NCBI RefSeq assembly: GCF_022045235.1
Contig: NW_027266279.1
Span: forward strand, 1,860,001-1,924,000
DNA length: 64,000 nucleotides
Reading direction: 5' to 3'
DNA from: Haliotis cracherodii
Taxonomy: Eukaryota
Position 1 is the first letter of the stretch, and each line of letters starts with the position of its first letter. Positions 6,664 to 53,494 of the stretch are shown here, in pieces. The notes beneath the pieces are model-generated. The model saw only the letters and a list, made by a program, of their open reading frames with translations. It was not told the DNA's origin and searched no databases. Position numbers and translations under genes: made by a program.

Positions 6664-6734
6664 ATGCAAATAATTTGTAAATTAATACACGTATCATGCA
6701 TGATAAAATGACACTGTCATTCTGAATTACGGGG

Positions 6735-28117: not shown

Positions 28118-28120
<3 letters not shown>
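27020..28120. repeat. 11-bp satellite (GTAGACTGGAC)n, ~100 copies, with GAAGACTGGAC and GAACCCTGGAC variants
   Basis: Tandem units visible directly; 11-aa (33-bp) period in the ORFs; abuts (GT)n at 28122-28185. Confidence 0.96.
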
Positions 28121-29119: not shown

Positions 29120-31647
29120 TTATGTACACTTATGAATCGCGCATTGTTCCCATCCCTGCTCATAGGCTAGGTAGCACCACAGGTAACCGGAGGGCAGAAT
29201 GTTGCCTCCAGAAGGGTCACGGCAGTAGTTGGCGGCGCCAGCGTAGCCGAGGTTTGGTACACCGTTGGTGATGTCGAAGTAGTTGCGGAAGAAGGCGTGA
29301 TTGTTCGGGGACGTGCTTGACCAGGACTGACATGTTTTTCCGCTTGCGGTTACAGATTTTGTACCACTGTAGACTGCTGTTCTCCCTTGCTTGGTGTAAC
29401 AGTCAGCTGTGAAGAAAATGTCAGTATTAGAAACAGTCCTTTATACAGATATGATTCATACTTTCTTGATGCGGTGTGTCATTGATTGAAGGGGGCATTG
29501 AATTGTTTTTTTCTGTCATATCAGGCTTGTCATGTTGACTGATGGAACAATTAACAGTCTTAGGCGTTTTCAACTTTGGTAAAACCCATTGTACATATAC
29601 ATTGCTGGCAAACGACGATCATGGGATCTTGGCGCGCCCAAGGGAGAAACTCTGCACATCGAAAACATAGTAGTTGGCAAGGAAGTAGGACAAGTTTTCA
29701 TATACTTAGTCTTGTTTGCAAAATGTTCAGAGGAAAAGTGGGTTTCGGGGTGCTTTCCCTAAATCCTTAAATTGAGCGACATGGCAGTAATGTGATATCT
29801 TTCATACAGCAATGTGGCGAGTGAGTATATGAATATGGTTTTACGCCGCTTTTAGCAATATTTCAGTCGTATCTAAGCAGGACACAGCAGACATGTCACC
29901 AGAGATAGGTGATATCTTTCACGAAAAGATTAGACTGTCACACAACAAAGTATGACAAGAAAGAAAAAATATTCATTTCAGTTTATTGTTTTTTCAAGGC
30001 CATATGACCCATATGATATACATGTTTATCATTCAGTTATACTACATTGCACATTTCCGTTCTAATGTTAAATACAACCTACATATATTTTGACACATGA
30101 AATATATTCTGAAGTATTTTACCATTGACTATAGGCATCATATCGTGGGCTTGGTTGTTTGTTAAAACTGTTCCATGAGTGCGTGCATGCGTATACAGAG
30201 GCCATACAATACAAACGTGCTTTTCATCTTCAACATATTTACAGTGCGAGCAGATAGTTTTCATCACCTACATGACATTCACCTTCACGTACGTTTTGAA
30301 CACCAAAGGTGTTATATCCACTTCAGAAATGTTAGCAGCCTTTCTGTAATTTATTACTCTATGTTGGACATACGATTCAAACTTAAGTTCAGATTTTATG
30401 GTTGAATAAAAAATAAGTCATCTTTTATCTGTGAGACGTGAATGCCAGTTTTGTTCAGCACAATCAAGGATTCGTTGTTTCAGAACAAAGGTAAACGTTT
30501 CCTCAGTACCAACTCCCTTGGATACCCAAACATACCCGAAGCCATAACTAAACAGCAACTTTCTGATATGAGATGCCCAATTCAAATATTTCCTTTCACA
30601 AGTATCATATATCATTCGAAAACACTTGTGCGGATGTCAATATGTGGGCAAAGATGAAACACGTAACCAATATTTGATACAAATGACATAATAATTTGTA
30701 TCCAGTGGATATCTGCCACTCTCACCATATGCAACAGCACTTGGCAAGGAATAACTTGTATTTAAAACATTCACAATTTTCTATGTACAATATCTATATT
30801 TTCCTTTTTGGGTGTATCCCCACAGCTCATTACCATTCAACAATATCGGTGCTATTTTTGTGTCAAACGGTTGAAAGGCTTTATTAACAGATATATAGTA
30901 TTTACACACAAACGTTTTGATGGTATATTGTGCTTCACTTGCCTACTCTGCGAGGGTATAACAAGCTCTAGTCCAAATCAGCTTTGGAGTAATCATTCGA
31001 CCAAGATATAGACTAAGATTCGACCAAGAGCTAACAGTCTCAAGTGGTACATTATAATATTCCATCTTTCGTATCTAGAGAGTATACTGACTCCGAGCCG
31101 ACCAGTCCTTGTTTCAGCCTCTAAATGTCGAGCGCCAGACAGGGTAACAACAAGTACTATTTTTTAACGCCTTTTCGTATGACACGGCCGGGGATCGAAC
31201 CCAGGACCTTCCGCTCTCCGGACTACTATTGATCTAATTACCAGCCAATCAAATAGATGTAAATGCATTGTTTGGAAAAAGATGTAATGAACGTTCTTAC
31301 GATTAGCGCTTCTCTCTCTCATTTGTAATTTACGGAAAGCTTTGAAACAATGGTAAACACATATTCTATACAAGGGGCGGTCGGGTAGCCTAGTGGTTAA
31401 AGCGTTCGCTCGTCACACCGAAGCCCGGGGTTCGATTCCCGACATGTACAATGTGTGAAGCCCATTTCTGGTGTCCCCCGCCGTGATATTGCTGGAATAT
31501 TGCTAAAAGCGGCGTAAAACCACACTCACTCACTCACTCACTATACAGACTATATATTAGTCCACAGCATAAAGAGAATCACTTACTATTGCATGCTGCC
31601 AGTGTTGAAAGAACTGCTACGATGGCGAGGAGCAGGAGACGAGCCAT
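29120..31647 (-). CDS. Secreted single-kringle protein K1, 115 aa; exons join(31647..31587, 29406..29120)
   Basis: Exon 1 encodes MARLLLLAIVAVLSTLAACN followed by gtaagt (phase 1). Acceptor ttttcttcacag. Exon 2 encodes TDCYTKQGRTAVYSGTKSVTASGKTCQSWSSTSPNNHAFFRNYFDITNGVPNLGYAGAANYCRDPSGGNILPSGYLWCYLAYEQGWEQCAIHKCT*, with six kringle Cys and the Y.G, T.SG..CQ.W, NYCR, WCY and W..C motifs. AATAAA at 29093-29088. Absent from the ORF track. Confidence 0.9.
30150..31050 (-). mobile_element. Degenerate LINE 3' region (RTE-X-like) in the K1 intron
   Basis: Minus-strand peptides NWASHIRKLLFSYGFGYVW..FVLKQRILDCAEQNW and CSHCKYVEDEKH, typical of the C-terminal part of such ORF2 proteins. Confidence 0.6.
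31374..31540 (+). mobile_element. tRNA(Asp-like)-derived SINE family A, full length
   Basis: Sequence runs ggggcggtcgggtagcctagtggttaaagcgttcgctcgtcac..gggttcgattccc..gctaaaagcggcgtaaaac-(ACTC)n, with flanking ctataca duplication. Confidence 0.88.
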
Positions 31648-31900
31648 GTTGCTGCCTGTACAGTTGAGACCGACTGGTCCTTAAAACGGCGTAGGTACGA
31701 CACACGTCGTGACATACACGGACAACTGTTGACGTGGGTGATGATATTGCAATTTTAGATGAAATTCCCATTAGCCTTTCTGCCATGCGTGACAGATGTG
31801 AGGCCAACGTAATTGTCAAATTCTCATGAAAGAGTCTTTGTCCGAGTAAATAGGGCACTGATGTAGGTTATTGAGTGAACATACTCCAAGTGTATTGTAG
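31648..31900 (-). promoter_or_regulatory. Conserved 5'UTR/proximal promoter block of the kringle genes (paralogous blocks at ~37408-37650, 45454-45690, 53495-53695)
   Basis: About 250 bp of non-coding sequence aligns among all four paralogues (acacgtcgt, ttgacgtgg, attgcaatttt, gacagatgtg.ggccaacgta.ttgtcaaat), while sequence further out does not. Confidence 0.7.
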
Positions 31901-32638
31901 TATCAAGAAGTACCATATTTCAACGTCTTTTGGTATAACGTGGCCGGGCATCGAATCCACGACCTTCCGCTCTCCGGGCAGACGCTCTGTCCACTAGACC
32001 ACGTATTAAATGTTGTGTTTTTTGTGTGGAAATGCTTGATGTGGTGGAAATATAGGACTAAAGATACATTGAAATAAATATCTTTCATGGACGGGGAGTA
32101 GAGTGTCGATGATTGACTAACGATGATTTCGCTATCATGCATCTAAACTGGACTAGGCTCAAACCAATTGGCAGTTCGGTCAGTTTGATTTATACCATTC
32201 AAAATCCACTTTTACTGCAAACTCTAGCTGGATGTTTTATATTAATGTTGCCGGAATTGCCTCCATGAAGACCCTAAGCCAAATCAGTAACGAGTCAGTA
32301 ACTACAACATCTCGACATTGACCAGAACTATCCCCTGAACCGCGTAGCATTGTCTCCCTTTGATAATGACGTCATGTTAAACTCTTTAAATCCAGTAACA
32401 CTGTGCCAGTATGTTTGTTTTGTTTGTTGTTTACGCCGCACTGACTTAATTGATGATTATCATCGTATCCCGAATGCGTGGATAGATGCTCATGATATCA
32501 ATCACAGAACTGTCTGGACCAAACTCGATTATTCACAGACCGCAGTTACATGTCTGGGATATTGCTGATTTCGACGCTAAACAAACAAACATAGTATTAC
32601 ATACGTATAATGTGTTTCAGCGCTCTCACACACACACA

Positions 32639-32690
<52 letters not shown>

Positions 32691-32875
32691 CACACACACA
32701 CTCACGCACGCACGCACGCACGCGCGCACTCACGCAGAGTAAAGTTACCCCTCAAGTGAGTTTCAACTGATCTGTGATGGCTGTTCAGGGCTGCTGCAGC
32801 TTCATTAGAGCTCGTATTGGAAGGTGTAGATGAAGATGACGTGCCAATGTCAACTCCTGTTTTCACACTGTCGCG

Positions 32876-33037
32876 GGGGAGGTCGGGAAGCCTAGTGGTT
32901 AAAGCGTTCGCTCGTCACGCCGAAGACCCGGGTTCGATTTCCGACATGGGTACAATGTGTGAAGCCCATTTCTGGTCTTCCCCGTCGTGATATTGCTGGC
33001 ATATTGCTAACAGAGGCGTAAAATCATACTCACTCAC
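32876..33037 (+). mobile_element. SINE family A copy with a 13-bp target-site duplication
   Basis: TSD tcacactgtcgcg at 32863-32875 and 33038-33050; empty paralogous site at 25923-25935. Confidence 0.9.
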
Positions 33038-34584
33038 TCACACTGTCGCGTGTTGTCCATGTCTCCGAACTATCCGGTATGGATGTACAGCCGTTGACCA
33101 ATCCACGAGGACGACGTCGTTAATCCACGAGGACGACGTCGTTAGGGCTCCACACTAAATCAGCACCTGCGACAGCGCTGTGTGGTCCAGTGTGTCGGCG
33201 TCACATTTGGGCAGCGCTTCAATGCAGTAAACGTGTGGATTATCAAATAGAAATTTGTTGAAGATATCACTTGAATAGACTTAATCTTGCTTATCTTAAA
33301 TATGCAGAGGGATTTGATTTCAATTAGTGAAATTGACAAACTTTGCTGATGGCTGATCAAACATTATTTGCCATTTCGGCGTCTTTGTACTGCATGGAGT
33401 CAATGGCATACAGACACGCACGTTTCTGTACTTCAAGAATAAGTTACTCTTCATTTATTTGTGATTTTGGCATCGTTATTTCTACAATGAAGACTGTATT
33501 TGTCAAACCATGTGTTTTCTTTTCCCGGAAATGACATATCAATGAAAAGGGGATTTCCCAAAGCGTCATGGCAGCAAGCAGCAAACGTCGCTTTTTTCAC
33601 GATTTAATAAAATTCCTGCTTTCACGCTACTGCTGCCCTGCAGGTTGACTATCTTAAAAAACAACTAGAGGCGATATATTTCTGTATATTTGTGGCTGCA
33701 CCACTAACGCGCTGGTGTCGTGTTGGGAGGCCTTGAGGATTGTTTAAACAGATGTGTACATAAACTTTCCCGCTATCAAAGATGACAGACTCCATCAGCT
33801 TGTGTTAAACCTAGATATCGAAAGCATCAAGGGCTTGGTGGGTGTTAGGGAGGAACCGATGAGCTAAGGGGGTGGGTTTTTGTTTTTTTTATTGGGGGGG
33901 GGGGGGGGGGGGGGGGGGTGTCGCTTCACATACTTTAAGGAGGGGATGGAGGGCTTGAAAAAATGACAGTTTTGCTTCTTCAAATAATTTTGGTATGACG
34001 CGGCCGGGCATCGAACCTACGACCTTCCGCTCTCCGGGCAGACGCTCTATTCATGTTTTGGTTCATGTGTGGAAATGTATGACTAAAGACACATTGAAAT
34101 GAAGTTCTCTCATGGACTAGTATCACTGTGCCAATATGTTTGATTGTTTGTTTGTTGATGTTGTTTACGCCGCACTCAGCAGTATTGAAGCTACATGACG
34201 GCGGTCTGTGAACAATCGAGTGATTGACATCATGAGTATCGATCCACGCAATTGGGATACGATGACATGCATCAATCAAGTCAGCGAGCCTGACCATTCG
34301 ATCCTTTTCGTCGCCTCTTACGCCAAGGATGGGTTGCTGAAAACCAATTCTAACACGGATCTTCACGGTTTTAGGCCATACTGGGCAATATGACAGTTAT
34401 GTCAAAGCACAAATTGAACGACAGAGTGACATTTCTCCCAATTTAGGACTATAAAAGAATATTTTATTCCAGATAAATTCCAGAATAATATTTTCCGCTT
34501 TAGGACGTCCTGAGTAGAATGTGTAAAATTCGTTTGTTCAGCTCCTTTAATAATATGCCAAATGATGTGGAGTTAAGTAACGTC

Positions 34585-34950
34585 TGTCGCGGAGAGGAGT
34601 TGCATGGGGACCGCGTTTAGCAGCTTGACTCCTATGAGTTTCTTGGTCGACGGTCCTGCCCCAATCTGAAGCACATGCAGGACATGTAGCTCATGTATTG
34701 TCTCCCAGGCAGTGACTTTGTTCGAATTGTGCCTCTGTTCACCCAGCAGTAGAAGTGTGTACCCGGGAGGATGAGATGGCATTGGGATTGTTAACCTTCC
34801 AGCACATCGCAGCCAGCCTTGTTTGTATACTCCCCCGGGAGCTCAGAATGAAAGTCGAGTACAGACTGATCCACTGACCAGGGTAATGACGTAGCGCTTT
34901 GATCAGACGTTATGGTGTGGATCTGGAGCATTATGAATACGCACATTATT
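34585..34950 (+). mobile_element. Old CORE-type SINE remnant (tentative)
   Basis: gtattgtctcccaggcagtgactttg..gcctctgttcacccagcagtagaagtgtgtacc resembles a CORE domain; the 3' end gtagcgctttga..cattatt resembles an L2-type tail. Confidence 0.4.
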
Positions 34951-34952
34951 AA

Positions 34953-34984
<32 letters not shown>

Positions 34985-34986
<2 letters not shown>

Positions 34987-36100
34987 ATACAAAGTAAAAT
35001 AAATAGATGCCGCAAAGAATGTTCGTGGCACAGTCATCATGATCATCAGCTAAGGGTCCTGGTCCCTTCTCCACGCACCCCAGACAGCGAATTGGATTTC
35101 TCCCAGGAAGAGTTGCCTCGTCGAACCCACCAAGAACCTTTCGGAGAGTATGGAGACTCCCCAACACTGCAGACTTCTGCATTGCCCAGGGGCCACGGGT
35201 GGCTCAGTCGTCTAAGGCGCCGCGATTCGCTGTGCAGAGTTGCGTCCCTTGGGCACGCCAGAAACCTATGGTTGTGGGTTCGAATCCCGGTCAGCCCCGA
35301 TTATGTTTCTAGGTTTGTCAGCACCATACCCGTGCCCGTGGTAAGTGGTGAACGTCTGAGACCTGCATCACTTCGGGCGTTCCTCCCATATTAAGCTGAC
35401 ACGCCGCGATATAACTGTAATACTGTTCAAAGAGGCGTTAACCCCAACTCACACTCAATCTGCATTGCCCAGATTGTCAGAAGGGTTGTGTTCCCGTCAG
35501 TCAACAGATTGGGAGGTACCAAACCTGAGGCACCGAGAACAATGGGGAGTCGGGGCAACTTGGTACTAGGGATGCAAGCGTGACATTTAGAAAACGAAGT
35601 CCGCATATTTGCCATGTTTTTCCTGAATCTTGTCAATCACATTAGTGTCAAAAGAGACAGAAAATTCAATGATACAAATGATTTCATTGGATTTATCGAA
35701 AAGGACAGGACCAGGTTTGTTGGCCTTGATAGGTCATTTTCCATGACGCCCTGCACATATTCCGGGTCGTACCATGGATGGACCTCTGTGTCCAAACCAC
35801 AAGCATCGCGAACAAAAGGATCGAGCCACTCCATCATGGCGCCTAAGATACTGTGTTTGTGCCAAAGCTGGGCATCCACTGACAATGTGTTCGACAGTCT
35901 CATTAAAATTCATTGCATAATGTACATATCATATCTACATTTTGATGCAAAATCACACATTGACGATTTCTAGTGGGAAGCGACTGGTCCTGAGCTGGTT
36001 TCACTTTCAGGAAAGCCGACCTCTTCCAAGCCAGGGTTTCTGCAGTGATGCTTTACATCTCAACACACTGCACATAAACTCGATGCAGTGGTCGTTCACA
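34985..36100 (-). mobile_element. Second truncated R4/Dong-like copy, interrupted by SINE D
   Basis: Reverse-complement homologue of 2660-3600 (MQKSAVLGSLHTLRKVLGGFD; ACGLDTEVHPWYDPEY); its 3' end runs into (AAC)n at 34953-34986. Confidence 0.82.
35190..35458 (+). mobile_element. SINE family D copy with a 14-bp TSD
   Basis: TSD tctgcattgcccag at 35176-35189 and 35459-35472, splitting the R4-like coding sequence. Confidence 0.9.
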
Positions 36101-36501
36101 TAGCCTCTCGTTGACCAAGAAAATAGTGTCAAAAGGTTGGTTTGTTTGTTTGTTGTTTTACCCCGCACTCAACAATATTCCAGCTATATGACGGCGGTCT
36201 GTAAAATAATCCATTGTGGACCAGACAATCCAGTGATTGATATCATGAGCTTCGATCCACGCAATTGGGATCGATGACATGCATCAACCAAGTCAATCCC
36301 GTTAGTCGCCTCTTACGACAAGCATAGTCGCCTTTTAGCGTCAAAAGGGACAGATTGTTATTATTTTCATTATTCTCTTGTAATTGACCAAGAAAATAGT
36401 ACATCAAGGTAATATTACGTGGTCAGTGCCTCTTAGGGATGGAAAACAAGACTATTTTGTCAATTTAGATTTATTATCAAACAATATTCACTTATGGAGA
36501 C

Positions 36502-37407
36502 TTATGTACACTTATGAATCGCACATAATTCCCATCCCTGCTCATCGGCTAGGTAGCACCACGGATAACCGGAGGGCAGAATGTTGTCTCCAGAAGGGTC
36601 ACGGCAGTAGTTGGCGGCTCCAGCGTAGCCGAGGTTTGGTGCACCGTTGGTGATGTCGAAGTAGTCGCGGAAGTAGGCGTGATTGTTCGGGGCCTTGACG
36701 GACCAGGACTGACATGGTTTTCCGCTTGCGGTTACAGATTTTGTACCACTGTAGACTGCTGTTCCCCCTTGCTTGGTGTAACAGTTAGCTGTGAAGAAAA
36801 TAGCAATATCAACAATAAACACATATACACAAATAATGCTCATGCTTTTTTGACGCGGTTGTCTCATCGAGCGAAAGAGGGTGATTGAATTCGGTTCAAC
36901 GGTTGAACAACTTAGCTATATCTCCTTGCACTTTGTCAGAAGCAATATAAAACCCACGATTAATATCTTAATTTCTTTACTAATCGCACGAAAGAGAGTG
37001 GTACAGTTTGGTATAACGTTTGAAATTTGTGTCAGGAACAACACTTGATTTTCTGCTGTTCTCCCTTGCTTGGTGTTACAGTCAACTTTGAAGAAATTGT
37101 CAGTATCAGAAATATGATATATACAGATTCATACTTTCTTGATGCGGTGTGTCATTCATTGAAGGTAAAACACACAAGTACATTGATGGCAAACGACAAT
37201 CATAGGATCCTAGCGCCCCCAAGGGATGCAACTCTACACACTTTTTGACTTCACAGTCCACTCCCCCCCCCCTCTCTCCCCAACAATGGAAAACAGATAT
37301 TCCTTTTGACTATATATTAGTCCACAGAATTAAGAGAATCACTTACTATTGCATGCTGCCAGTGTTGAAAGAACTGCTAAGATGGCGAGGAGCAGGAGAT
37401 AAGCCAT
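36502..37407 (-). CDS. Secreted single-kringle protein K2, 115 aa; exons join(37407..37347, 36788..36502)
   Basis: Exon 1 encodes MAYLLLLAILAVLSTLAACN followed by gtaagt. Acceptor ttttcttcacag. Exon 2 encodes TNCYTKQGGTAVYSGTKSVTASGKPCQSWSVKAPNNHAYFRDYFDITNGAPNLGYAGAANYCRDPSGDNILPSGYPWCYLADEQGWELCAIHKCT*. AATAAA at 36475-36470. Confidence 0.9.
37053..37165 (-). pseudogene. Truncated duplicate of a K1-type kringle exon start plus its upstream intron, inside the K2 intron
   Basis: Aligns to 29375-29490. The acceptor has changed from cacag to caaag, and only DCNTKQGRTA remains. Confidence 0.75.
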
Positions 37408-38367
37408 GTTGCTGGCTGTACATTTGAGACCGACAGGTCTTTACACCGACGTAGGTACAACCCACGTCGTGACGGGCAGTCAAATGTTGAAGTAGGTGAC
37501 GACATTGCAATTTTAAATGAAATCCCCATCAACCTTTCTGCCATGCGTGACAGATGTGCGGCCAACGTAACTGTCAAATACTTATAAAAAAAATGTCTTT
37601 GTCCGAGTAAATAGGTCTCGCATGTAATCCATTGAGTGTATACTCCATGCATCCATCAAGATATTGCACCAGCTGTAGGGAGTGGCTGTAACGAGATGCT
37701 TGAATGTTTGCAATGAAATTTCGTACGACCCCCATAGATAACCAAAGAATGATTGTCATTGTTGTGAACACATTATACAGTGACATGAACTCCTTGACGG
37801 ATTTCCGTGGATATTAATACTTTTCACTGAACAGAGAACAGTGAACATTACTGGACATTATTGCTACTTTGATAATTGATACACATTATCCTGTACATAA
37901 AAGTGGCAACTGGTGATATTGTTCACATTCCGTCATGAAGTCGGATCATAGGATAAAGCTATCAGGTAGACGTTGTGTGTCGAGATTAAACGGTCGACAG
38001 TTACACATTGCCACTTGAATAACACCTTTCTAAACCTGACAGCAAAATCTCCCAACAAGAAACACATGTATAAGAATCGGAATTCATAGCTCACATGGTA
38101 AAAGTAAAAAGTCAACACTCTGCTTCATTGATGACGCATCCTGTACCAACGCAACATGGCATGTTTTTAATGATATGTGGTGAAGACATATATACCAGGA
38201 ACTATATGGCTCACGGCATAGATAATCACCTAACTGTTGCCTTTATTAAAATGATTTGGACCAACAGTTGGTGACAGTAAAACAAAAAGAGCATTGATTC
38301 CATTGATTGCTTCACATTTTAATGCACAGTCAGTGTGGTTTGGCACATTGAGTATCATAGATATGAA

Positions 38368-38517
38368 GTGAGTGAGTATGGTTTTACGCCGCTTTTAGCA
38401 ATATTCCAGCAATATCACGGCGGGAGACACCAGAAATGGGCTTCACACATTGTACCCACGTCGGGTCTTCGGCGTGACGAGCGAACGCTTTAACCACTAG
38501 GCTACCCGACCGCCCCC
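38368..38517 (-). mobile_element. SINE family A copy
   Basis: Reverse complement of family A, flanked by a catagatat duplication. Confidence 0.85.
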
Positions 38518-38639
38518 ATAGATATTAAGAACATGTACATATTGTATGTCATACTATAACAGAAAATGAACGTATAATATGTCATTAATACTTTAAATAA
38601 GTTGCACATTTCATTAGGTTATGATTATATTTTTAAAAA

Positions 38640-40195: not shown

Positions 40196-41373
40196 AAGAG
40201 TGTTATACCATTTTATTTTCTCTTTGGCCTGTACAAATAAGTATCGGGAGTGAGGCAGTGAGCTGGGTTTAACGCTGTTTTGAACATTATTGAAGTTATA
40301 TCACGGAGTGTCGGCTCGATGTAAGAAGAAGGCTCGAAGCGCATTTAACACGAGCACGGGTATGGTGCTGACAAACCTAGATTGTCAGGGATTCGAACCT
40401 ATGACCATTGGTTTGTGGCACACCAAATGGGAAGCTTGTGTATTTTCACTGGAATATCGACTACTACGACCATTATCAACCCGGTTAAAGAAGTAACTCT
40501 CTTTATAAGTTACATTTTGTGAGTGAGTTGGGTTTAAAGCCGCCAGTTACATCATGGCGTGAATGTGGAAAGAATGACCAGCTTGACGCACGTCGTTGGC
40601 CTCGAAATGTTACTGAACATAAAGGGAAAATTGACTTTTGGAAAGTTTCATTTTGCATAGACCTAAATATGAAACAGACGAAGCGGGCTCAATGTTTTTT
40701 GTTTTTGTTTTGAATCAAACTGATGTGCATTTCGAACCAAGAGGTTGTCTGTTAAATTCTTGGCATCAAAACCCAAATCACCAACTCACTTCTAGACAGG
40801 AGCGTTCCCGCATAGCTGATACGGATGTGACCCTGCTTGTTTTAAAAGAACGCCCTCCTCCATCACGGCATGACAGCTTGGTGCTGGAGAAAATAGCGTT
40901 ATGTGAATCTCTACCAAAATGTCTGGTCTTTCTGGGCAACACGTTCCCTAATCACTCCTTCATTTACACATTGCTTTGCTCATAGTGATGTGAGCTCGTC
41001 GGTACTCTGACACAGAGTGTTTGTTCGAAAGGAATCCGCCCTACCTTTTCGCCGTGCCAGATTGATGCTGGAGAAACTCCAACAATAACGTAGACTAGCA
41101 AAAATAATTTGGCTCAGGCTCAAATCGAAAACATTTCGTATGTCCTAAAAATGTTACTGTTCGGCTCTACCCCGCCCCGAATATAGCAACAAATAAACAA
41201 AACAAAAAGAAAACAAAAAGAAACACAAATTAACACCAAATATGATACAGTCCATAATTAAGAAGATGGAAAACAATACCATTTTTTTCAATCAGAATTT
41301 ATTATTGAAACAAGATTCACGATTCAAATCTTGTGTTGATATTCAAGATCCACTTATGTACACTTATGGACAC

Positions 41374-44300
41374 TTATGGGCACTTATGGGCCGTGCATGT
41401 GTCCCACCCTTCACCATCGGCAGTGTAGCACCACAACGATCCCATTGGAGGGTTGGAGTCTGAAGATGGGTCACGGCAGTAGTTTTCAGGATAGCCGAGG
41501 TTTGGTGCACCGTTGGTGATGTCGAAGTTCTGGCTGAGAAAACCGTGATTGTTCGGGGTCTTGGCGGACCAGGACTGACATGTTTTTCCGCTACTGGTTT
41601 CAGATTTTGTACCACTGTAGACTGCTGTTCCATCGTGCTTGGTGTAACAGTCAGCTGTGAAGAAAATGTCAGTATCAACAATAAACACACATACATAAAT
41701 TATCCTCACGCTATTTGGACACGGTTGTCTCATCGAACGAAATAGGGTGATTGAATTCGTTTTAACGGCTGAACAACTTAGCTAAATCACAGTGTGTCGG
41801 CTAATGTGGGGTGAGATGCAAAATTTATGCGGGTCTCAGACATTTGCAACTTTGGTAAAACGAGGATCATAATTAGGTTGAATATTGAATTCGTACCACG
41901 GTCATAGGATCCTGGCACGCCTAGCGGGCGGCAACTCTACGCTTCGAAGTGGTGCGCCTTCGACAACTTGTGGCACCCGTTAAATTAAATCATGATATAA
42001 ACATGGCATTCGGCATGTACACTGGACTAGTTCACTTCTTAATGCACTGTCTTGATTGCAATATAATTAAGAACAAAATTTAATTTCGAGGAGCTTTCTT
42101 TAAATCCTTCCAAAATAACGATTTCACGCTTTTCGTTGTTGTTCGGCGTCAGGCACCAAGGAAACATTTACTTTTTAATGCAAATTGTATGAGTGTCGGG
42201 CGCTTCCTGTGGGGCAAGGCATCCTTCCCTTTAAGCAAACACCTGTGTTATCACTTTAAGCGAACACCTGTGTTATCACTGGTTTTCGTGAACCATTCGT
42301 ATATATTTCACCCTTATTTTGCCTTTTCCGCGTAATGGAATCTGTTTCGGCGGATAACCGAGACTAGTTAGACCCAGCATTCGTCACCCACAATGAGAGA
42401 GATTTGAGTTACGTCGTTTCCATGCGGTTTTCCAGCTGTATCACGGCGGGGGATACCAGAAATGTCACCAAGGATTTATGTCACTGAAAGATGATGTTTT
42501 CTCGCTGCAACGGTTTTAAAACTACGTCTGTGATAATCTAGTTATTTTACTGTCCTTCGTCGACAGGTTTTATTTTCAGTTTTGTGTATTATTAATATAT
42601 AACTTGATTCAGTCACGATATGGCTGAAATATTGCCGATGTGATTATAAACTCACTCACTCACTTACTCTCACTGCAACGTATGTAATAAGATAGAAAAT
42701 ATAGACAGTTTTATATTTACAATATTGTTGCCATGACCACATGTTATGCTGCCTTCTTCCAATGTTTCAGGTCTCTGGGCTCTCTGTTTTTAGAAATTTA
42801 GATTTGTACAATTTCAAATTTTCATTAAAATACCTCAAATTAACTGAACCAGATAATTTTGAGATTGAAAGAAGGGAAATGAAACTAGGAGTGATGGAAT
42901 TACCGCTTCATCTATCAAAATTTAACATAAAAATAGAAGCACATGACAAGACAGATAGTCCAAGTCCTCATTTACGTGTGTGAATGCAAACATGAGTGAG
43001 TGAGTTGGGTTTAAACACCGCTTTTAACAGTATTCCAGTTATATCTGCCCCAACAGTAAACAGGCTTCCGCTTTACAAGATCTTTTGCGCGTTAACTGTT
43101 CATCTGCGTGAACGTCAGTTTCATGCGTGTTATGTAGTTTTAATGTATGATTGTCCTATCTATACTCGGCAACAAAAGTTCCGGTTGCATACAAAAATAA
43201 ACTTTCTGGTGTTCAAATCGGATACGAAACTATGAAAACGTGTAGCACAAACGCAACCTCAGCAGAAAAGCATGATCTGATGGCAAAAAGTGTCTTCCAT
43301 GCAGCAACCATGCACTTGATGATGTAAACCAGGGTATGAAAGCGCGCGTGTTGTGGGGATTCGGTGTCTGCTTGTCATGACAACTGCAACACGGAAAAAC
43401 ATCACATTTCAATCATTATTTGAAGTTTGGAGATGCCACGCCTATCTGAAAATGACCGCTTGCGAGCAATTGGTATGCTCCATTCAAGAACGTCGCAGCG
43501 TGAAGTTGGTCGGCGATTGAACGTGCACAGAAACACCATTTGACGTTATGGCAGCAAACAAACAGTCAGGGACCGACCAAGGAGCGGCAGGTCCCCCGTC
43601 ATTCAAGATCGTTGGATTCGAATCACCCATCTGCGAAATCGGTTTCAGCCTGCAACAATCACTGCGAGAACCATCCCTGGTCTTTGTCGAATATCGCCGT
43701 CTATCCCCCGTTCACATGCGCCTCTATACATATGTGTCAATATGGGCACACGTGTGTCGAAACACATATGTCAGTATACTTTTCATGTGAACGCATTTAC
43801 TCATGTGTGTATATTTACACCAGGAGCAAATTTGCATCATGCCTGGAGCAAGTGCAAATGTGAACGTAAATATGCACTGTGTGTATATGTTGCAATGTGA
43901 ATTATGTTAACATGAGAGCATGATCTTATTTATAGCTGTTCTTTTGCCAACACCAAACAAATTGTCAACAGTTGTCAACTTTTATGGGTATATAGTTGGG
44001 CGGACAGTGTTTTCTTTTGGTTTCAAGGATTCAAAACTTTGTGTACAAATTAAATCAAACACATGTTTCTTCACGCGAAAATTTTCGGTGAAGTAACTCT
44101 CTTCTCATTCAACTTAGGTTGGAAAACAAGTTAAACAACCTGTTTTGTGTTGAAAGTTATTTGGTTGAATATGTGTGCCTCACACAAGTTGAAATTCACG
44201 TGAACGCATAGTAAATTTACATGTACACACGTATGTATAGTTACACATGTGGAAAATTCTGGTTTGCAAGTGACCAATGGCAATTTGAACGGACAGCGTT

Positions 44301-45453
44301 AGAGTGACGAGGTCATCCAGCCTATCGTTGTGACGTTTTTGAATCAACATGGACCTGGCATGATGTTTCAGCATGAAAACGCCCGAGCCTATGTAGCTTG
44401 GATTGTTCAACAAGCACGTGGACAGAACAACTTGAATGTGATTCCATGGCCTAATCGCTCTCCAATTCTTTTTTACCAATTGAACACATGTGGGATGAAA
44501 TGGACCGACGTCGCCGACGTTTACCACGTGCTCCGACAACATTATAGGAACTGAGAGACAGGCTGGGGAGATATGGGATGCCATATACAAAACTGTAAGA
44601 CGTTTGATCCGTTTAATGCGCAGGAGATTGCATGCATCCAAGTGAGAAGGGTGGACACACACGCAACTGTGTCAATGGACAATTCTGTTCTTGCATCTCT
44701 TATCATAACGTCATTTCCGTGCTCGACATGTGTCATTAATTGTGTAAACTTGTTTTATTGGTCCATTGTCTGTTTGAAAATATGAATTCGTTCTGATGTG
44801 TGCGTCTACTTTGATCCGGTTTCAGATGTGTGCGTTTACTTTGATCCGGTTCTTGTTTTATATCGTGTCACAGTGTTTTTTTCTTGCTGAGTATAGTTAC
44901 TTATATAGAAGTTTTATCCTAACTGTACTGATTTTCAGGCGTGGGGATCCGGAGGCGGCGAGATTTGGGTTCAGCATTTTTTTGGTAATGTTTAGGAGCG
45001 GGTTGGTTTTTTTTCAACCAAAACAGGTGCCCGTTTATTATTTGTTTACCTGTTGGATGCAACAGAGACAGGGATAAACTTCAGTGCTAATTTGAAATTC
45101 GAAGAGCTTTTCGTAAATACATTCACGGGAATAAGATACCATTTAAAACATTTTGCAATGATACAGGTGAATCAAGTCAAAGGCTTTAGCGTCAAAGAAG
45201 CCACCTTTAAGATTTTAAAGAAACGTTTACCAAACATGTTTAACCAACAAGCACTGTTATTGTACGTGAAATGAATTTATTTATGTAGCTGCTGTCACCC
45301 ACACGACGGAGCATGATTTGACAAATTCCTCAAACGTCAGTTAGAACTGAACTTGTAAACTTGTAGTCCATAGAATTGAGAGCATTACTTACTATTGCAC
45401 GATGCCAGTGTGGACAGAATTGCCAAGGTCGCGAGGAGCAGGAGACGAGCCAT
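41374..45453 (-). CDS. Secreted single-kringle protein K3, 113 aa; exons join(45453..45393, 41654..41374)
   Basis: Exon 1 encodes MARLLLLATLAILSTLASCN followed by gtaagt. Acceptor ttttcttcacag. Exon 2 encodes TDCYTKHDGTAVYSGTKSETSSGKTCQSWSAKTPNNHGFLSQNFDITNGAPNLGYPENYCRDPSSDSNPPMGSLWCYTADGEGWDTCTAHKCP*. AATAAA at 41303-41298. Confidence 0.9.
43163..44893 (+). mobile_element. Defective Tc1/mariner transposon in the K3 intron, with a nested ~0.55-kb insertion at ~43705-44270
   Basis: Termini TA|TACTCGGCAA and TTGCTGAGTA|TA. N-terminal HTH peptide MPRLSENDRLRAIGML..QREVGRRLNVHRNTI..DRPRSGR from ~43433; catalytic region FQHENARAY..NVIPWPNRSP..PIEHMWDEM at ~44330-44520. Confidence 0.85.
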
Positions 45454-48400
45454 GTTGCTGTGCGGCGGAGACCGACTGGTTGTTGCTACGGAGAAGGTAC
45501 TACACACGTCGTGGTAGACAGTCAAATGTTGACGTGGATGGCGCGATTGCAATTTTAAATGAAATCCATATTGACCTTTCTGCCATGCGTGACAGATGTG
45601 AGGCCAACGTAATTGTCAAATTCTCCTGAAAGAGTCTTTGTTAGAGTAAATAGGGATTAGACGTAATCCATTTAGAATATTCTCCATGCATCTTTAGACA
45701 ATGGGGCAGCTGTGACGAGGTGTTTGAGTGATTGGAATAAAATTACGTATGAACTGCAGAGCTACAGATAAGCAGCGTATTGGCCCCCCTCCCCCCAAAT
45801 AAAAATAATAATAATCAAAACCCAATTACTCTCAATTAACTTGCGTGCAGAAACGCATGCATTAAATGAAAAACTCAAATGTATAAAAACAGCACGACGT
45901 CGCGTAAATACTCATTGAAGTTTTTTTCAGCACGTGTACAACGGAGCTAATTTCCGAATCACAATTACGAGCTAATTTACTTTCCGTGTCAAGCCTATAT
46001 ATTTAGAACAGTTATATACATGTAAAGGCGGGATATTTTGCCCAAGTTCCTTACAACAGTTACCAAAATATCCGGCCAATTTACTAATTTTAGAATAGGG
46101 TTTGGGGTTCACGGCACTGGTCTCAGGGGTCCCATAGCAACAGCTCTTAGCCAATAGCCTGGGACTATGGGGTCACATGACAGGGGCCAGTGCCCCCGTG
46201 TGACCTCAAAACTTTTTAACCGCCTCTTTCTGCCTGCACTGCCTGGACACCAACATCGCCAGCTAGCCCTGTTCATTTTGTTTTAGGTAAGAGCACCAGT
46301 TTCTCTGTACGGCATCTATAGGTCTATTGTAGGCAATTATTGTATGGTCCGGTGCATAGTTATAACATTTACAGGATTAGGAATCATGTGCTGCATTTAT
46401 TTTCATAAAGTCAAGCAAAATTCAAAACAAGTGTTTGGCCATTGTCCAAGTAATTCTTGCTGTGCCAAACTGGCAAACATCGCTCATCTGTGACTGTCCA
46501 AAGGTGCACCCAATGGCAATAATGAATGACATTTATTTGTTGCACTATTTTCTCGTTTGAAAATAGCTGTAGTAAAATACCTTTTGTGTTTGGAAGTAAT
46601 TTTGCTAATTGGATCGGCCAGTCAAAATTGAAACTAGCTCTTTGCTAAATTCAAAGTTCCATTTATTCCAAATTCTTTCGTCTGATAAATGCACTTGTTG
46701 CTGACAACAACAGAACTCTGTTGCAAGTTTATTTTAAAGTAACAAGTGGCTGACCCCTCACTGACAGCTCTTGACCTGTGCGCTGGGAGCACACATTATC
46801 TTCGGCTATCCTCGGCATTCTCCGGCTCTCTTCCGGTGGCATCACAAAATGGCCGCACCGGATGTAAACAAGGCATGGCTCCGTCGTCTGCTTCATGTTT
46901 ACCTTAACACAGTTTGGCCTACCATACATTAATGTCATCCTATCCTAATGTCTGCGAAGTAATGGTAACACATACCAGTTCACATATATGGCATAATATT
47001 CAGGCAATTTAAGATTAGTGTACATTCCTGCAGATGATAATTTTCTTGTCCTCTTGGCGTCTGGCGTTACGCAATCCCATATGATGACAGCTGGCTTAGC
47101 AGTAACCAACTTCTAAATATGGAAATACCCTGTTTATTAAATACCAATCCTGTCCTATTAAATATGTAATATTTCTACATTGTCGGATTGGTGTTATAAA
47201 GTATATTTCACGGCGTTTTCCCACTTGATGTGATAGTGAAGTCACCTTGTATTCAATAATAATATAATGTATTATATTATATGGCCAACAATTTGCCTGC
47301 AATCTGAGAAATATGTATTATGTAATATCCATTTACTACATTCATTTTTAATACATTTGCTTTAATTCGGCATTCATTCTGGGTAGCCTCACGTGGCTTA
47401 CCTACTGGGTGTATTGTCATACTGTTGGAGCTAGCCCCATATGGATTGGTATGATCATCCAACAGGCAGTCATACCCCACTCCTCTTAGCCACAATTCTA
47501 GTACAGGCCAGGTGTCCTTTCGTGGTTATTAGGCTTACGTGTTTAAACCGGTTATTTATACATGCATATCATATTCCAAATGCGCTGGGATAAATATTCC
47601 CTCACTTTGGGTTTAAATCCTATATCCTATATGGTAGAAAGGATGTGATGATTATATTGGGGGATTATTGGTTAATGTCATTTCCGTAAACAATCATTGT
47701 CGTTGTGTATTTATTTATGCACATATGCCTTTTTGTATCAATAATGCGTTTGCATAGTCCTTAACATTGTCATTTTCTCTTATAAGTATTATCATCACAT
47801 CCTGAATATCGGTTGGATTATTGTTGATTCTTTTAAATATATTATATAAGCTCTTTCTGCCTGCACTGCCTGGACACCAACATCGCCAGCTGGATCAGCT
47901 CATTTTGTTTTAGGTGTCTTCCAGTCTGTGCAGTCAGGATTTGCACCCTGTAACTTTCTTACTTTATAATACACAATTATTACTGTCTTTTTGTGTTGTG
48001 TTATCTTTGACTGGAGTATTTCGCGCAGTAAGCACACTTGCCCATCCCTTTTCCGTGAGACGAAATCGTTACACAACTGTGGTGATTTCACAGGTCTTAC
48101 ATACATCTAAAAACATTATTTCATTTTTTTAGTCTTAAAATGTTCACCAACTTTGGGAAAAACCCAATAGAGTGATGAATAGATGAGTGAAAATAATATT
48201 GGTTTACCAATGAAAAATATAATAACCCAATTAAAATAGAAACCTTAGAGTAAAAACTCAATTGCTCTAAAAGTTATCTGGAGCTCTGATGAACGCAATA
48301 GATAACCAGAGAATGATTGGCATTGTTGTCAACACATTATATATTAACATTCCCCGTTTGAAATATATTTTGTGGATAGTAATATTTTGTTATTGAACAC

Positions 48401-48815
48401 AACAGTCAGCACGATAGTGTCTACTGCTGATATTATTCCTATTCCGTCTTGAAGAAGGACAAAGTTAATTTGGGTTGAATTGGTTCATTTAGTAAACGTT
48501 TTATGAGACAAACTAGTATTGGTTGCATTGATACATACAGATCTGTGGCACTTTATAATCCAACGGACTCACAAACTCTACTCCTTGTCCTTTTTCTAGA
48601 TACCAGGGGGCGCTGGAGGTCCAGCAGTCGTATCGTGTCGGGTTCATGTCAGTTTGTACACATTTGAGACTCGTTCCACACGTGATTTAATTTGGGAAAA
48701 ATAATATATACAATATCAATTAATATTCCCGTAATATTAATTAGACTAAAATTATGCGTGGAACACATAGTCTAGAGTCTATACACAGTTTTATGAAATA
48801 ATGAATTTCAGATTA

Positions 48816-49043
48816 GAAGGTAGACATAATTTTATGGATAACAACTTCTTTTGTACTGTAAAAAGCGAGGTTTCGGTGTAAATCCTTATACAGTTGTCAA
48901 GTATACTGTTTGACAGTCTTGCTTAACAACGGCATAAGGATCTATACCGAAACGTCGCTGTTTACAGTACAAAAGAAGTTGTTATCCATAAAATTGTGTC
49001 TACCTTGTCATCCGTCAACTTCAAAGTAATGCTTATCAAACAA
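48816..49043 (+). mobile_element. Palindromic insertion with a 12-bp TSD; probable Penelope-like inverted pseudo-LTR
   Basis: Imperfect inverted repeat at 48817-49006 plus a 37-bp tail; TSD aatttcagatta at 48804-48815 and 49044-49055. Confidence 0.65.
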
Positions 49044-49884
49044 AATTTCAGATTACTTTTGAAACAATGTCAGATTGCAACATGTTTTCAAATATCGAAA
49101 GGCCAATGTTGAAGCATTGTCGATACAATGTATTTTAACGAATCAACCCCAGATCAACCAAATGCCAACACTGAAACACATTGTTCTTTCTTCACGTATG
49201 TTCTTTTGTAAATAATGACATTTATTTGTAACATTCATTCTTTAATCGTAGACCCGTGAAGATTCCGGGGTTGAATAGGTCTTCAGCAACCCATGCTTGC
49301 CGTAAAAGGCGACTAACGGGATCGGGTGGTCAGGCTCGCTGACTTGGTTGAAGCATGTCATCGATCCCAATTGCCTGGATCGATGTACATGATGTCAATC
49401 ACTGGATTGTCTGGTCCAGACTCGATTATTTACAGACCGCCGTCATATAGCTGGAGTATTGCTGAGTGCGGCGTTAAACAACAAACCAAACCAACTTTTA
49501 TCGTGACATTTGACTATTTTTGAATTTTTGTCCTTTATTTCTACTCTGTTATTTTTTACCAAATGGCCATCCATATATCTGCCCGTAAGTATTGCATGAA
49601 AAGCCTCAATAATTCCGACGGTTACGTTCCTGATAACTCGTTAGAATTCGTTGATGCTGGGGTAACTTCCACAAGGGGCATGGACTGGTTTTTACCAAAA
49701 ACACTCCACGAAATGAAACATTTGCTAAGAAATAAATTATCCGTTTTTTCCCAGTAAATGGTATGTCCCTTATAAAGATAGAAAAACAATATTTTCAATG
49801 TATATTTATTATTGAAACACGAATCACGATATTCTTTTGATGATCAAAATTCACGATCTAAATCTTGTTTTAATATTCAAGATT

Positions 49885-52800
49885 TTACACTTGTGGACAC
49901 TTTCGAACACTGCAAAGCCCCCATCCTGGCGCATCGGCAGTGTAGCACCACAGATACCCGGATGGCTGGAGGGCGCCTCCAGAAGGGTCCCGACAGTAGT
50001 TGCCGGCGCCATGGGAGCCGAGGCCTGGTGTACCGTTGGTGATGTCGAAGCTCGCGCCGTCATAGCCATGATTGTTCGGGGACGTGCTTGACCAGGACTG
50101 ACATGTTTGTCCGCTACTGGTTTCAGATTTTGTACCACTGTAGACTGCTGTTCCATCTTGCTTGGTGTAACAGTCAGCTGTGAAGAAAATGTCAGTAACA
50201 ATATTAAACACATAAATAATATGCATACTAGTTTGGTTCAATGTTTGACTATTTTCATTTGTGTGTGTTTGTTTGTTGTTTAACGCCGCACTCAGCAATC
50301 TTATAGCTATATGACGGCGGTCTGTAAATAATCGAGTCCAGACCAGACAATCAAGTGATTGACATCATGAGCATCGATCCACGCAATTTCATAGGGCGAA
50401 AAGGCAAAATAGTGATGACATATATATGAATGAATCACTTAAGATCAGTGATGACACCAAGTGTTCACAAAAGTCAAAGCATGTCAGTGTCAATAGTGAG
50501 AGTTTGTTTGTTGTCTGACACCGCACTCATCAATACTCCCGCAATACGACGGCGGTCTGTAAACAATCGATCCTGACCAGACAATCCAGTGATCAGTATC
50601 ATGAGCCATGGTCCAAGCCTGTTCCCCCGACCCACTACAGTAGTGTCAGTGAGTAATGAGGTGTGAAGACCCGTTAAGGTCATAATATTGGATAGCATCG
50701 GGCACCATATTGACATGCGACGTGTCATATTTGACAAATTCCTCTGCTTGTCTTCTATATAATGTTTGGTATGATTTCCGACATTTGATGGTGAATAAAG
50801 GCCATAAAAACACGAGCATGGCATCATAAGCATCGTTCCACGCAATTGAGATACGATGACATGCCAAGTCAACCAAGTCAACCAAGTCAGCGAGGCTGAC
50901 CACCCGATGATACCGCACGACCCCGTTAGTCGCCTCTCACGACAAGCACAGTCGACTCTTACGACAAGCACAGTCACCTCTCACGGCAAGCACAGTCGCC
51001 TCTCTCGACAAGCACAGTCACCTCTCACGACAAGCACAGTCGACTCTTACGACAAGCACAGTCGCCTCTAACGACAAGCACAGTCGCCTCCTACGACAAG
51101 CACAGTCGCCTCCTACGACAAGCACAGTCACCTCTCAAGACAAGCACAGTCGCCTCTCACGACAAGCACAGTCGCCTCTCAAGACAAGCACAGTCGCCTC
51201 TCACGACAAGCATTCGCGGATCTTCACGGGTCTTCGTTTGTGTCAGGTTAAGGGAACAACAAATTGATTTTCGACAGGGGATTGGGTGTGGTGGTTGTGG
51301 TTGGTTTGAGATCAGCATTTTCTTCTTAATGCTTGGGAGGTCAATTATTTTTATCCAAGAAATAGGTGCTCAATTAATATTTAAATAAATAATAACAGCG
51401 AGTTGTATTCTGTGGACAGTTGAATATACACTTTTATACAGGATCGTCTGTGACCGGGGGTAAAACCCTCCCACATTTCGGCCTCCATGTGCAGCGCCAT
51501 CTTTTTTAAGTTGGTTGGTCAAATACATTATCTGTCTGTCGAAGTTGTGACAGACAGACAGATAATGTATTTGAGTCTCACCTCGTTATTATATAATACA
51601 TGGTGAATACACTCCTTAAAAATTTATTAGTATAAAAGCATATAGAGTAACGAGCCACTCCCGAGAGACTATTTAACATGGGTTTGTTTGTTTGTTGTTT
51701 AACGCCGCACTCAGCGATATTCCAGCTATATGAAGGCGGTCTGTAAAATAATCGAGTCTAGGCCAGACAATCCAGTGATTGACATCATGAGCATCGATCC
51801 ACGCAACTGGGATCGATGACATGTATCAACCACGTCAGCGAGCCTAACCACCCGATCCCTTTAGTCGCCTCTTACGACAAGCATAGTCGCCTTTTACGGC
51901 AAGTTTGGGTTGCTGAAGACCTATCCTACCCCGGAATCTTCACGGGTCCTTTAACATTGGTAAAAACATGTATACATTTTCACACATGTTACACCTGATA
52001 GTATTGATTGTACCAGGCTATTCACAAAAGACAATAATCTATAGTACTACGTGGTGTAGAGCATCCGATCTGGTTGTTAAAATATTATTGCAGGTCTTGA
52101 CAGTTGTAAAAATCAATTCTGGGCGGGACAGTATAAAACCTACTTTCTGTAAATCACTAAAACTATCAAAATCAGAACAAATTTAACGACATTTGGATAT
52201 AAGACAAAATCTAAGATCTTCATAGTGTGGACAATATAATGTAACATGCCTTTTATCTTCTATTTCATCCGTAAAAAACGGGCAGATTCTCTCTGCAAGA
52301 GGTGTATTGGGGTAGCGTCCTGTCTCAACTCTCAGCGGTGCTGCACCACTTCTAAACCTTGACAGGGCGCTACGTAGTTCTAGGGAGGCTTTTGTGTACA
52401 CATTCTTCAATACCGTAATTATCCTTCCATGAATCGACCCCTGAAGATCTGATGGTTACATTCAGCAACCCATGCTTGCTGTAAAAGGCGACTATGCTTG
52501 TACTCAGCAATATTCCAGCTATATGAAGGCGGTCTGTAAATAATCGAATCTGGACCAGACAATCCAGTGATTAATATCATGAGCATCGATCCACGCAATT
52601 GGGATCGATGACATGCATCAACCAAGTCAGCGAGTTAGTCGCCTAAGTTAGTACGGCAAGCATGGGTTGTTGAAGACCGATTCTACCCCGGATCTTCACG
52701 TCTCACCAATGCGGGGCATATGTAGATAAACATCAGCAAAACATAGGCTTGATTGTTTATAAAGAAGAAATCCAGGATAACCCACCCCACCGCCATCACC

Positions 52801-53156
52801 CTCCATTTGAAAATCAATCAAACGGCTGATACCTGAAGTGGGAGAAGGGTCCAAAATGAACTTCAAACGACAGCGCATGATTGGACGACTTTTGTTCTCA
52901 GGTTTCAGACCGACTCCGTGGGCTAGAGGTAGAGCGGAAGGTCCGGGGTTCATGATCAATCCCCGGCCGCGTCATACCAAAAGACGTTAAAAGATGGTAC
53001 TTTTTTTGTTACCCGGCCTGGTGATCGGCATTAAGGGGCTAAAATAAGGACTGGTCGGCTCGAAGTCAGTGTCTGAGTGGGGTATTCATGTTAAACTGCG
53101 GCATGGTATCTCAGTGAGCTAGCACTTTTAATCGGCATCAGTCCGGACTTGTACAA

Positions 53157-53200
<44 letters not shown>

Positions 53201-53494
53201 ACACGTACGTGCAGGCACGTCGCTATAAAAGTGCAATAATCTTGAACGCGACGTCAAACCCCATTTCACCTCACCTCACCTCTCAGGTTTCAAAAAACGA
53301 ATTAAAACGAATGGTTCACTGGACATGTTGGTTGTTCTGAAAATTAATGTGATGTCTCACAAACTGTTTCCCTCATGCTTCAAGCGAAAAGGATTTGTAA
53401 GTCCATGCAATTATTAAACAGAACATTACTTACTACCGCAAGCTGCCAGTGTAAAGAGAACTGCCAAGGTCGTGAGGAGCAGGAGACGTGCCAT
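49885..53494 (-). CDS. Secreted single-kringle protein K4, 117 aa; exons join(53494..53434, 50177..49885)
   Basis: Exon 1 encodes MARLLLLTTLAVLFTLAACG followed by gtaagt. Acceptor ttttcttcacag. Exon 2 encodes TDCYTKQDGTAVYSGTKSETSSGQTCQSWSSTSPNNHGYDGASFDITNGTPGLGSHGAGNYCRDPSGGALQPSGYLWCYTADAPGWGLCSVRKCPQV*. AATAAA at 49810-49805. Confidence 0.9.
50928..51210. repeat. 22-bp tandem repeat (GACAAGCACAGTCGCCTCTCAC, ~13 copies) inside a family B element
   Basis: Tandem units flanked by the family B body on the left and its head (ggatcttcacgggtc) on the right. Confidence 0.9.
52010..52430 (-). mobile_element. LINE 3' fragment (RTE-X-like C-terminus) in the K4 intron
   Basis: Peptide LRSALSRFRSGAAPLRVETGRY....ERIC....EIEDKRHVTLYCPHYEDLR. 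Confidence 0.65.
52908..53283 (+). mobile_element. SINE family C, full length
   Basis: Homologous to the reverse complement of 26190-26549. Confidence 0.82.

Follow-up and report, generated by a model that had tools for sequence, protein, structure and literature searches.

A tandem family of predicted secreted single-kringle proteins of a long-loop subtype in the abalone Haliotis cracherodii

In textbooks, kringles appear as modules of large vertebrate proteins, and among smaller kringle proteins NK1 and NK2 of hepatocyte growth factor (HGF) carry a PAN domain, while PIK3IP1 and Kremen are membrane proteins with a kringle. The subject of the present analysis is a set of four genes, here named K1–K4, that lie in a tandem array on the minus strand of a 64,000-nt stretch of the genome of the abalone Haliotis cracherodii (NCBI RefSeq assembly GCF_022045235.1, contig NW_027266279.1, positions 1,860,001–1,924,000; hereafter the window). 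Like NK1, NK2, PIK3IP1 and Kremen, the predicted K1–K4 proteins are small and have few kringles (one or two). With the classic kringles (plasminogen kringle 4, apolipoprotein(a) or apo(a) KIV-7, KIV-8 and KIV-10, HGF, ROR1 and ROR2) they have in common the six-cysteine triple loop, at 30–38% identity, the motifs NYCR(D/N)P and (P/L)WCY, and the aromatic core formed by W25, W62 and W72; unlike in these systems, the kringle of K1–K4 would constitute the entire mature protein, is extended by an FD(I/V)TNG loop, and has its lysine-binding charges replaced. In the flatworm, a membrane-bound protein of ~1360 aa with six kringles, Tmed-krg1, is needed for temporary adhesion and has been proposed to bind lysine (PMC9229212), and a kringle is also present in a protein of limpet pedal mucus (PMC7333891). 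Tmed-krg1, which is tied to a mucus or adhesive system, and the predicted K1–K4 products are both lophotrochozoan extracellular kringle proteins, compared here at the level of the domain, and the analogy concerns possible function only. The short kringle predictions of other taxa, e.g. one of 97 aa from Gigantopelta aegis (P0177), are at most 40% identical to K1–K4 (47% in one fragmentary match), are for the most part devoid of a signal peptide, and in many cases resemble exon fragments from short contigs. What is new here is a conserved tandem family of kringle-only, predicted secreted proteins, a long-loop kringle subtype devoid of the lysine-binding charges, and a link to kringle-mucin genes. 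The explanation that we favour, with a probability of about three in four, is that K1–K4 are four separately promoted two-exon abalone genes for a signal peptide plus one long-loop kringle, the products of which act as soluble single-domain binders of a ligand other than lysine.

An earlier note on this DNA, made from its letters, had claimed four intact genes on the same strand, each with a signal peptide, a single kringle, a stop codon and AATAAA; when the minus strand is read at the coordinates of that note, all of these elements are present (Table 1). In each gene, exon 1 comprises 61 nt from the ATG, encodes a predicted 20-aa signal peptide and ends at the donor A/GTAAGT, with one base carried over into the following codon. 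The introns are all of the GT-AG type and in phase 1, and an invariant acceptor, ACATTTTCTTCACAG, precedes exon 2, the coding part of which (281–293 nt, 92–96 aa) specifies one kringle with six invariant cysteines and reaches an in-frame stop one to three codons past the sixth. The distance from the stop to AATAAA is the same in K1 and K2 and much longer in K3 and K4. The block upstream of the ATG can be aligned in all four copies and contains a TATA-like TTTAAAATTGCAAT ~110 nt before the ATG, and in the whole 1.18-Gb assembly the DNA of exon 1 plus the 5′ untranslated region (UTR) is present at exactly four places, one for each gene. Since each copy has its own conserved upstream block, a separate promoter-like region can be assigned to each gene. 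Within the window, tblastn detects exactly four kringle exons. Signal peptides have a positive n-region, a hydrophobic core of ~15 residues and small residues at −3/−1; the putative signal sequence, read by eye, shows M-A-R, then LLLLAIVAVLSTLAA, and A-A-C/N at the presumed cleavage site. The predicted precursors of ~115 aa consist of a cleavable signal peptide and a single kringle and nothing else; cleavage past A-A-C would leave a secreted protein of ~10 kDa with six cysteines.

The splice junctions that had been proposed coincide with those of the predicted NCBI gene models, and the four H. cracherodii RefSeq proteins, compared piece by piece, equal the exon-1 translation, a threonine and the exon-2 translation exactly. 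This corrects the earlier text, as the genes are already present in public annotation. Their H. rufescens orthologues are XP_046332469.2, XP_046332471.2, XP_046332467.2 and XP_046332466.1 (K1 to K4, respectively), and others are found in H. rubra (XP_046579736/37/38.1) and H. asinina (XP_067659119.1, the one orthologue in that species); the accessions are consecutive in H. rufescens and in H. rubra. Used as queries, exon 2 of K2 and of K4 returned only Haliotis proteins of 113–117 aa. A family-profile search of protein representatives gave mostly multi-kringle proteins at the top ranks, the short predictions of other taxa mentioned above were mostly fragment-like, and the ESM Atlas returned generic kringle clusters only. 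The literature searched, on kringles in combination with abalone, gastropods, mollusc mucus or single-kringle proteins and on plasminogen in abalone, contains no description of the K1–K4 proteins. The claim of an undescribed family therefore stands as far as that literature is concerned and falls with respect to annotation, where NCBI already models all four genes and their orthologues as 113–117-aa proteins: the family is predicted in public annotation, yet uncharacterised.

Between paralogues, exon 2 is 76–93% and exon 1 79–95% identical, and for the 150 nt that precede the ATG pairwise identity is 69–83%, whereas the next 250 nt and the intron interiors reach only ~47–58%. Such conservation of exons and promoter blocks over introns argues against the possibility that K1–K4 are silent or decaying duplicates that only look intact, which we regard as quite unlikely. 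In all four copies the splice sites and the six cysteines are intact, and 52 of the 94 columns of the aligned exon-2 translations, the cysteines included, are invariant. In a maximum-likelihood tree of 50 kringles, the ten from single-kringle proteins form one clade (support 97/94) that divides into K1/K2-like and K3/K4-like subclades, in each of which H. rubra or H. asinina is represented by intact members alongside the Californian species; the duplication is thus older than the divergence of these species, and the reading frames have been open since before the split. For silence or decay one may cite the abundance of transposons in and around the genes and the fairly high ratio of nonsynonymous to synonymous divergence (dN/dS) between the four paralogues (0.53–0.83 at dS 0.09–0.44, Nei–Gojobori), together with the fact that no expression was seen in four sequencing runs. 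These runs (X1–X4), only presumed to be RNA, were mapped on positions 31500–37500, a run search over 29000–37700 having given matches of small share. They produced deep piles on repeats, a 341-nt contig confined to the K2 intron, two short contigs that match K2 exon 2 at ~5% difference, and no exon–exon joint, and are best read as low-coverage DNA of related species. Selection on the genes, as claimed earlier, is borne out by intact orthologues in four Haliotis species, by the invariance of the cysteines and core residues, and by dN/dS values below 1. The kringle exons of H. cracherodii and H. rufescens differ by 3 (K1), 12 (K2), 7 (K3) and 9 (K4) residues; for a constrained scaffold the divergence of the family appears fast, with changes concentrated in loops.

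Intact exons next to introns full of transposons had also been reported, and the K1 intron does consist mainly of dispersed repeats. It holds SINE-like elements (short interspersed nuclear elements) of 135–145 nt, 94–97% identical to many genomic copies, and an interspersed repeat of ~1.1 kb; its repeat search gave 7476 candidates at first look. Intronic open reading frames (ORFs) that by eye resemble transposases or long interspersed nuclear elements gave no match in Pfam. The K2 intron contains a relic (37054–37150, minus strand) composed of a K1-type intron end and the ~35 nt with which the kringle exon begins, with the acceptor changed from cacag to caaag; the working intron end of K2 is 87% identical to that of K3 and 69% to that of K1. 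The relic and the mixed identity of the intron ends point to a history of recombination or conversion among the paralogues. In a 6-nt patch at 29313–29318, K1 equals K4 and K2 equals K3, in contrast to the overall grouping of K1 with K2 and of K3 with K4. The informative sites (36 for the overall grouping against 12 for K1 with K4 and K2 with K3, with a tight cluster at this patch, but too few to test) are suggestive of gene conversion.

The kringle identity of the encoded domain is supported at several levels. All four copies pass the PF00051 profile check that the earlier note had proposed, with 47.2–56.5 bits against a cut-off of 34.3 (E 1e-12 to 1e-15; profile positions 1–79, or from 5 or 7 to 79), and the Pfam search of K1–K4 detected no domain besides the kringle, neither PAN nor protease. 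Their six cysteines align with those of plasminogen kringle 4 and would be paired 1–6, 2–4 and 3–5. Compared with sequences in the PDB by phmmer, K2 exon 2 aligns with plasminogen kringles 1–5 and with kringles of HGF, apo(a), ROR and Kremen. AlphaFold2 was run on K2 only, using an alignment of 37 abalone kringles, and gave a model with a predicted local distance difference test (pLDDT) score of 86.8 and a predicted template-modelling (pTM) score of 0.81, weakest (71–74) at residues 41–60, which correspond to an inserted loop. The top Foldseek matches of the model are apo(a) KIV-8 and KIV-7 and plasminogen kringle 4, with template-modelling (TM) scores of 0.65–0.80; 69 matches, mostly kringles, had E ≤ 0.001, and all of those among the matches listed are kringle structures. 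According to this model, K2 adopts the kringle fold.

The K1–K4 kringles belong to an abalone-specific subtype that is recognized by its length, by two insertions, FD(I/V)TNG and PSGG...P.G.LWCY, and by a homologous signal exon. The span from first to last cysteine is 92–94 residues as opposed to ~79 in classic kringles, i.e. ~13 more. Relative to plasminogen kringle 4, the first insertion separates the PxxH segment from NYCR and bears the FD(I/V)TNG loop typical of abalone long-loop kringles, with F-D-I-T-N-G invariant in K1–K4; K4 is the sole copy with an N-x-T sequon (residue 47), located inside this loop. The second insertion, of five residues, follows the position-57/58 loop and precedes the PWC strand, beside the ligand pocket. 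The pocket itself is altered. From the canonical lysine-binding set (D55/D57, K35/R71 and W62/F64/W72, in the plasminogen kringle 4 alignment), D55 is replaced by S and R71 by G in all four copies and K35 by Y or F, and D57 is retained in K2 and K3 only, so that the charges are lost; the aromatic residues W25, W62, Y64 and W72 are all kept. With D55, R71 and K35 replaced, the canonical omega-aminocarboxylate (lysine) site is not intact, and an aromatic groove remains. This loss, together with the insertion beside the pocket, speaks against a plasminogen-type lysine-binding role, and we consider it very unlikely that K1–K4 are true plasminogen or apo(a) analogues that bind lysine in a clotting, fibrinolysis-like or adhesion system. 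Such a role would agree with the best structural matches, with the lysine-rich adhesive that the flatworm six-kringle protein is proposed to hold (PMC9229212), and with the automatic RefSeq names of K1–K4 and their orthologues, which read plasminogen-like, apolipoprotein(a)-like or hepatocyte growth factor-like. Plasminogen, apo(a) and HGF are, however, defined by a PAN domain and/or multiple kringles with a trypsin-like protease or pseudoprotease, and the precursors of 113–117 aa contain none of these. The names are misleading and could distort functional enrichment in abalone studies.

The genome contains at least 91 kringle matches, of which only four lie on the contig of K1–K4. Their nearest relatives are ~20 long-loop kringle exons on another contig (C14, 1.51–1.59 Mb), with 51–71% identity to K1–K4. 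Most of the C14 kringles continue in frame into Thr/Pro/Ala or (TTDS)n repeats of 40 to 424 aa, and six of them stop directly past the last cysteine, as K1–K4 do. The first exons of the cluster, MTRLLLLTAFAVLLVSCQ and the near-identical MTRLLLLTALAFLFASCQ, end in a phase-1 GTAAG donor and are clearly homologous, by their sequence, to the K1–K4 signal exon. A signal-kringle-PTS-kringle layout is present in two H. rubra proteins, XP_046577940.1 (288 aa) and XP_046577939.1 (480 aa). These observations indicate that the C14 cluster comprises several secreted, multi-kringle, mucin-like genes, seemingly uncharacterised. The C14 and H. rubra genes and K1–K4 have in common the kringle subtype, an M-x-R-LLLL signal exon (MTRLLLL in C14), phase-1 kringle exons and the terminal stop; the former differ in having two to ~6 kringles separated by Thr/Pro/Ala repeats of 40–420 aa, whereas K1–K4 have one kringle and no linker. 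In the tree, the single-kringle and C14 kringles form a common clade (93/83) that is sister to kringles of contig C20 (97/95), and the single-kringle clade is either sister to the C14 kringles or, as the best tree has it, lies within them. K1–K4 may derive from multi-kringle genes that lost their internal kringle-linker exons, or the change may have run the other way. The architecture is therefore less isolated than had been thought: K1–K4 represent the one-domain end of an abalone long-loop expansion that is otherwise found in multi-kringle, mucin-like proteins.

Although the closest relatives of K1–K4 are genes with several kringles, encoded likewise by phase-1 exons, and the DNA-like reads of X1–X4 offer nothing to exclude it, there is scarcely any chance that the K1–K4 kringle exons belong to longer multi-kringle transcripts, formed by read-through or intergenic splicing, and that the one-kringle models are annotation artefacts, since each exon has its own ATG/signal exon with a TATA-like upstream block, the early in-frame stop is followed by AATAAA in every copy, no mucin-like linker or in-frame extension lies downstream, and NCBI models separate 113–117-aa proteins, four in each of two species and comparable ones in a further two.

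Other kringle clusters of the genome, of the ordinary short type, are located at C2:30.29–30.49, C56:27.51–27.60, C25:0.68–1.23, C4:34.6–38.8, C45:34.98–35.05 and 46.03–46.19, and C67:3.81–3.94 Mb. The total number of matches amounts to a large expansion for an invertebrate.

Under the favoured explanation, i.e. four separate genes for soluble single-kringle binders, the K1–K4 proteins would be secreted as free, monovalent binding modules. The retained aromatic groove (W25/W62/Y64/W72) would be used for a ligand other than C-terminal or internal lysine, a proposal made because the charged lysine-binding residues are replaced. The proteins would act in an extracellular fluid or in mucus, where they would plausibly share ligands with their multivalent kringle-mucin relatives, and their fairly fast divergence fits a recognition role. 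Protease-cascade decoys, pheromone-like ligands and matrix components, the functions put forward in the earlier note, are conjectural candidates. Several points weigh against this explanation. Cleavage of the signal peptide was judged by eye with the −3/−1 rule. The 37347>36788 splice joint was seen in none of the runs X1–X4, which, being DNA-like, have no bearing on expression, and the public proteins in the K1–K4 clusters were all taken from genome annotation by NCBI, with no member contributed by assembled runs, which is a weak hint that expression could be low, narrow or absent. As regards descent from multi-kringle ancestors, the approximately unbiased (AU) test fails to reject monophyly of the C14 kringles (p = 0.19). 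Finally, both what the proteins bind and where they act are pure inference. A bolder version, which we hold to be unlikely, sees K1–K4 as fast-evolving soluble ligands or antagonists that would compete with, cap or regulate the kringle-mucin network in abalone pedal mucus, gamete or egg coats. In that case abalone would possess a kringle-based form of extracellular recognition or adhesion that does without lysine binding, built from a domain family otherwise known in vertebrate haemostasis.

The remainder of the window contains further features. On the minus strand, an 864-aa open frame in a single exon (4075–6669) combines LRR_8 (3e-37) with a C-terminal TIR domain (3e-15) in the layout of a Toll-like receptor, and a 253-aa open frame (22072–22833) has three peritrophin-A domains (CBM_14, 3e-23); the latter shares its strand with the kringle genes and lies ~6 kb beyond the 3′ end of K1, and its product is likely secreted. 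The plus strand carries an intronless 378-aa ORF (980–2116) that matches rhodopsin-family G protein-coupled receptors (7tm_1, 2e-18). Tandem arrays are also present. In one of them, at 8274–11848, a G-rich unit of 42 bp is repeated 85 times (93% matches, GC skew 0.73–0.79), and its minus strand is open for 929–944 aa with a 14-residue repeat that gave no Pfam match. More arrays of 40–42 bp are found at 12598–13052, 14544–15207 and 16006–17441, and one of 11/22 bp at 27015–28120.

Table 1. Coordinates of the K1–K4 genes in the window and of related features (positions within the window, except for the C14 cluster, which is given on its own contig).
Gene	Feature	Position	Strand	Basis
K1	Exon 1, signal peptide MARLLLLAIVAVLSTLAACN, donor A/GTAAGT	31587..31647	-	Exact prefix of XP_071110443.1
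K1	Conserved 5′UTR/core-promoter block, TATA-like CATCTAAAATTGCAAT ~110 nt upstream of ATG	31648..31800	-	Alignment of the four paralogues (mean column identity 85%); pairwise identity 69–83% against 49–58% farther upstream
K1	Intron, 2180 nt, phase 1, GT-AG, mainly dispersed repeats	29407..31586	-	Sequence read
K1	Exon 2 coding part, 6-Cys kringle and TAA stop (29120-29122)	29120..29406	-	PF00051 E 1.8e-13; exact substring of XP_071110443.1
K1	AATAAA, 26 nt past stop	29088..29093	-	Sequence read
K2	Exon 1, signal peptide MAYLLLLAILAVLSTLAACN	37347..37407	-	Sequence read; RefSeq match
K2	Intron, 558 nt, with relic at 37054-37150	36789..37346	-	Sequence comparison
K2	Exon 2 coding part, kringle and stop	36502..36788	-	PF00051 E 3.6e-15; AlphaFold2; Foldseek; equals XP_071110408.1
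K2	AATAAA, 26 nt past stop	36470..36475	-	Sequence read
K3	Exon 1, signal peptide MARLLLLATLAILSTLASCN	45393..45453	-	Sequence read; RefSeq match
K3	Intron, 3738 nt	41655..45392	-	Sequence read
K3	Exon 2 coding part, kringle (inserted loop 2 residues shorter) and stop	41374..41654	-	PF00051 E 3.7e-14; equals XP_071110348.1
K3	AATAAA, 70 nt past stop	41298..41303	-	Sequence read
K4	Exon 1, signal peptide MARLLLLTTLAVLFTLAACG	53434..53494	-	Sequence read; RefSeq match
K4	Intron, 3256 nt, 22-bp tandem array at 50928-51212	50178..53433	-	Sequence read
K4	Exon 2 coding part, kringle with KCPQV at its end, then stop	49885..50177	-	PF00051 E 2.8e-12; equals XP_071110423.1
K4	AATAAA, 74 nt past stop; ATTAAA also 10 nt past stop	49805..49810	-	Sequence read
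	N run in window	58522-58688		
	C14 kringle cluster (L001-L008)	1508905-1585753		Signal exons at 1513838 (-) and 1534149 (+)

A conserved tandem set of kringle-only, predicted secreted proteins offers a minimal natural system in which to learn what a lone kringle binds. The lineage-specific loop, the lost lysine pocket and the link to kringle-mucin genes together direct attention to an unexplored group of mollusc extracellular proteins, possibly involved in mucus, adhesion, immunity or reproduction.

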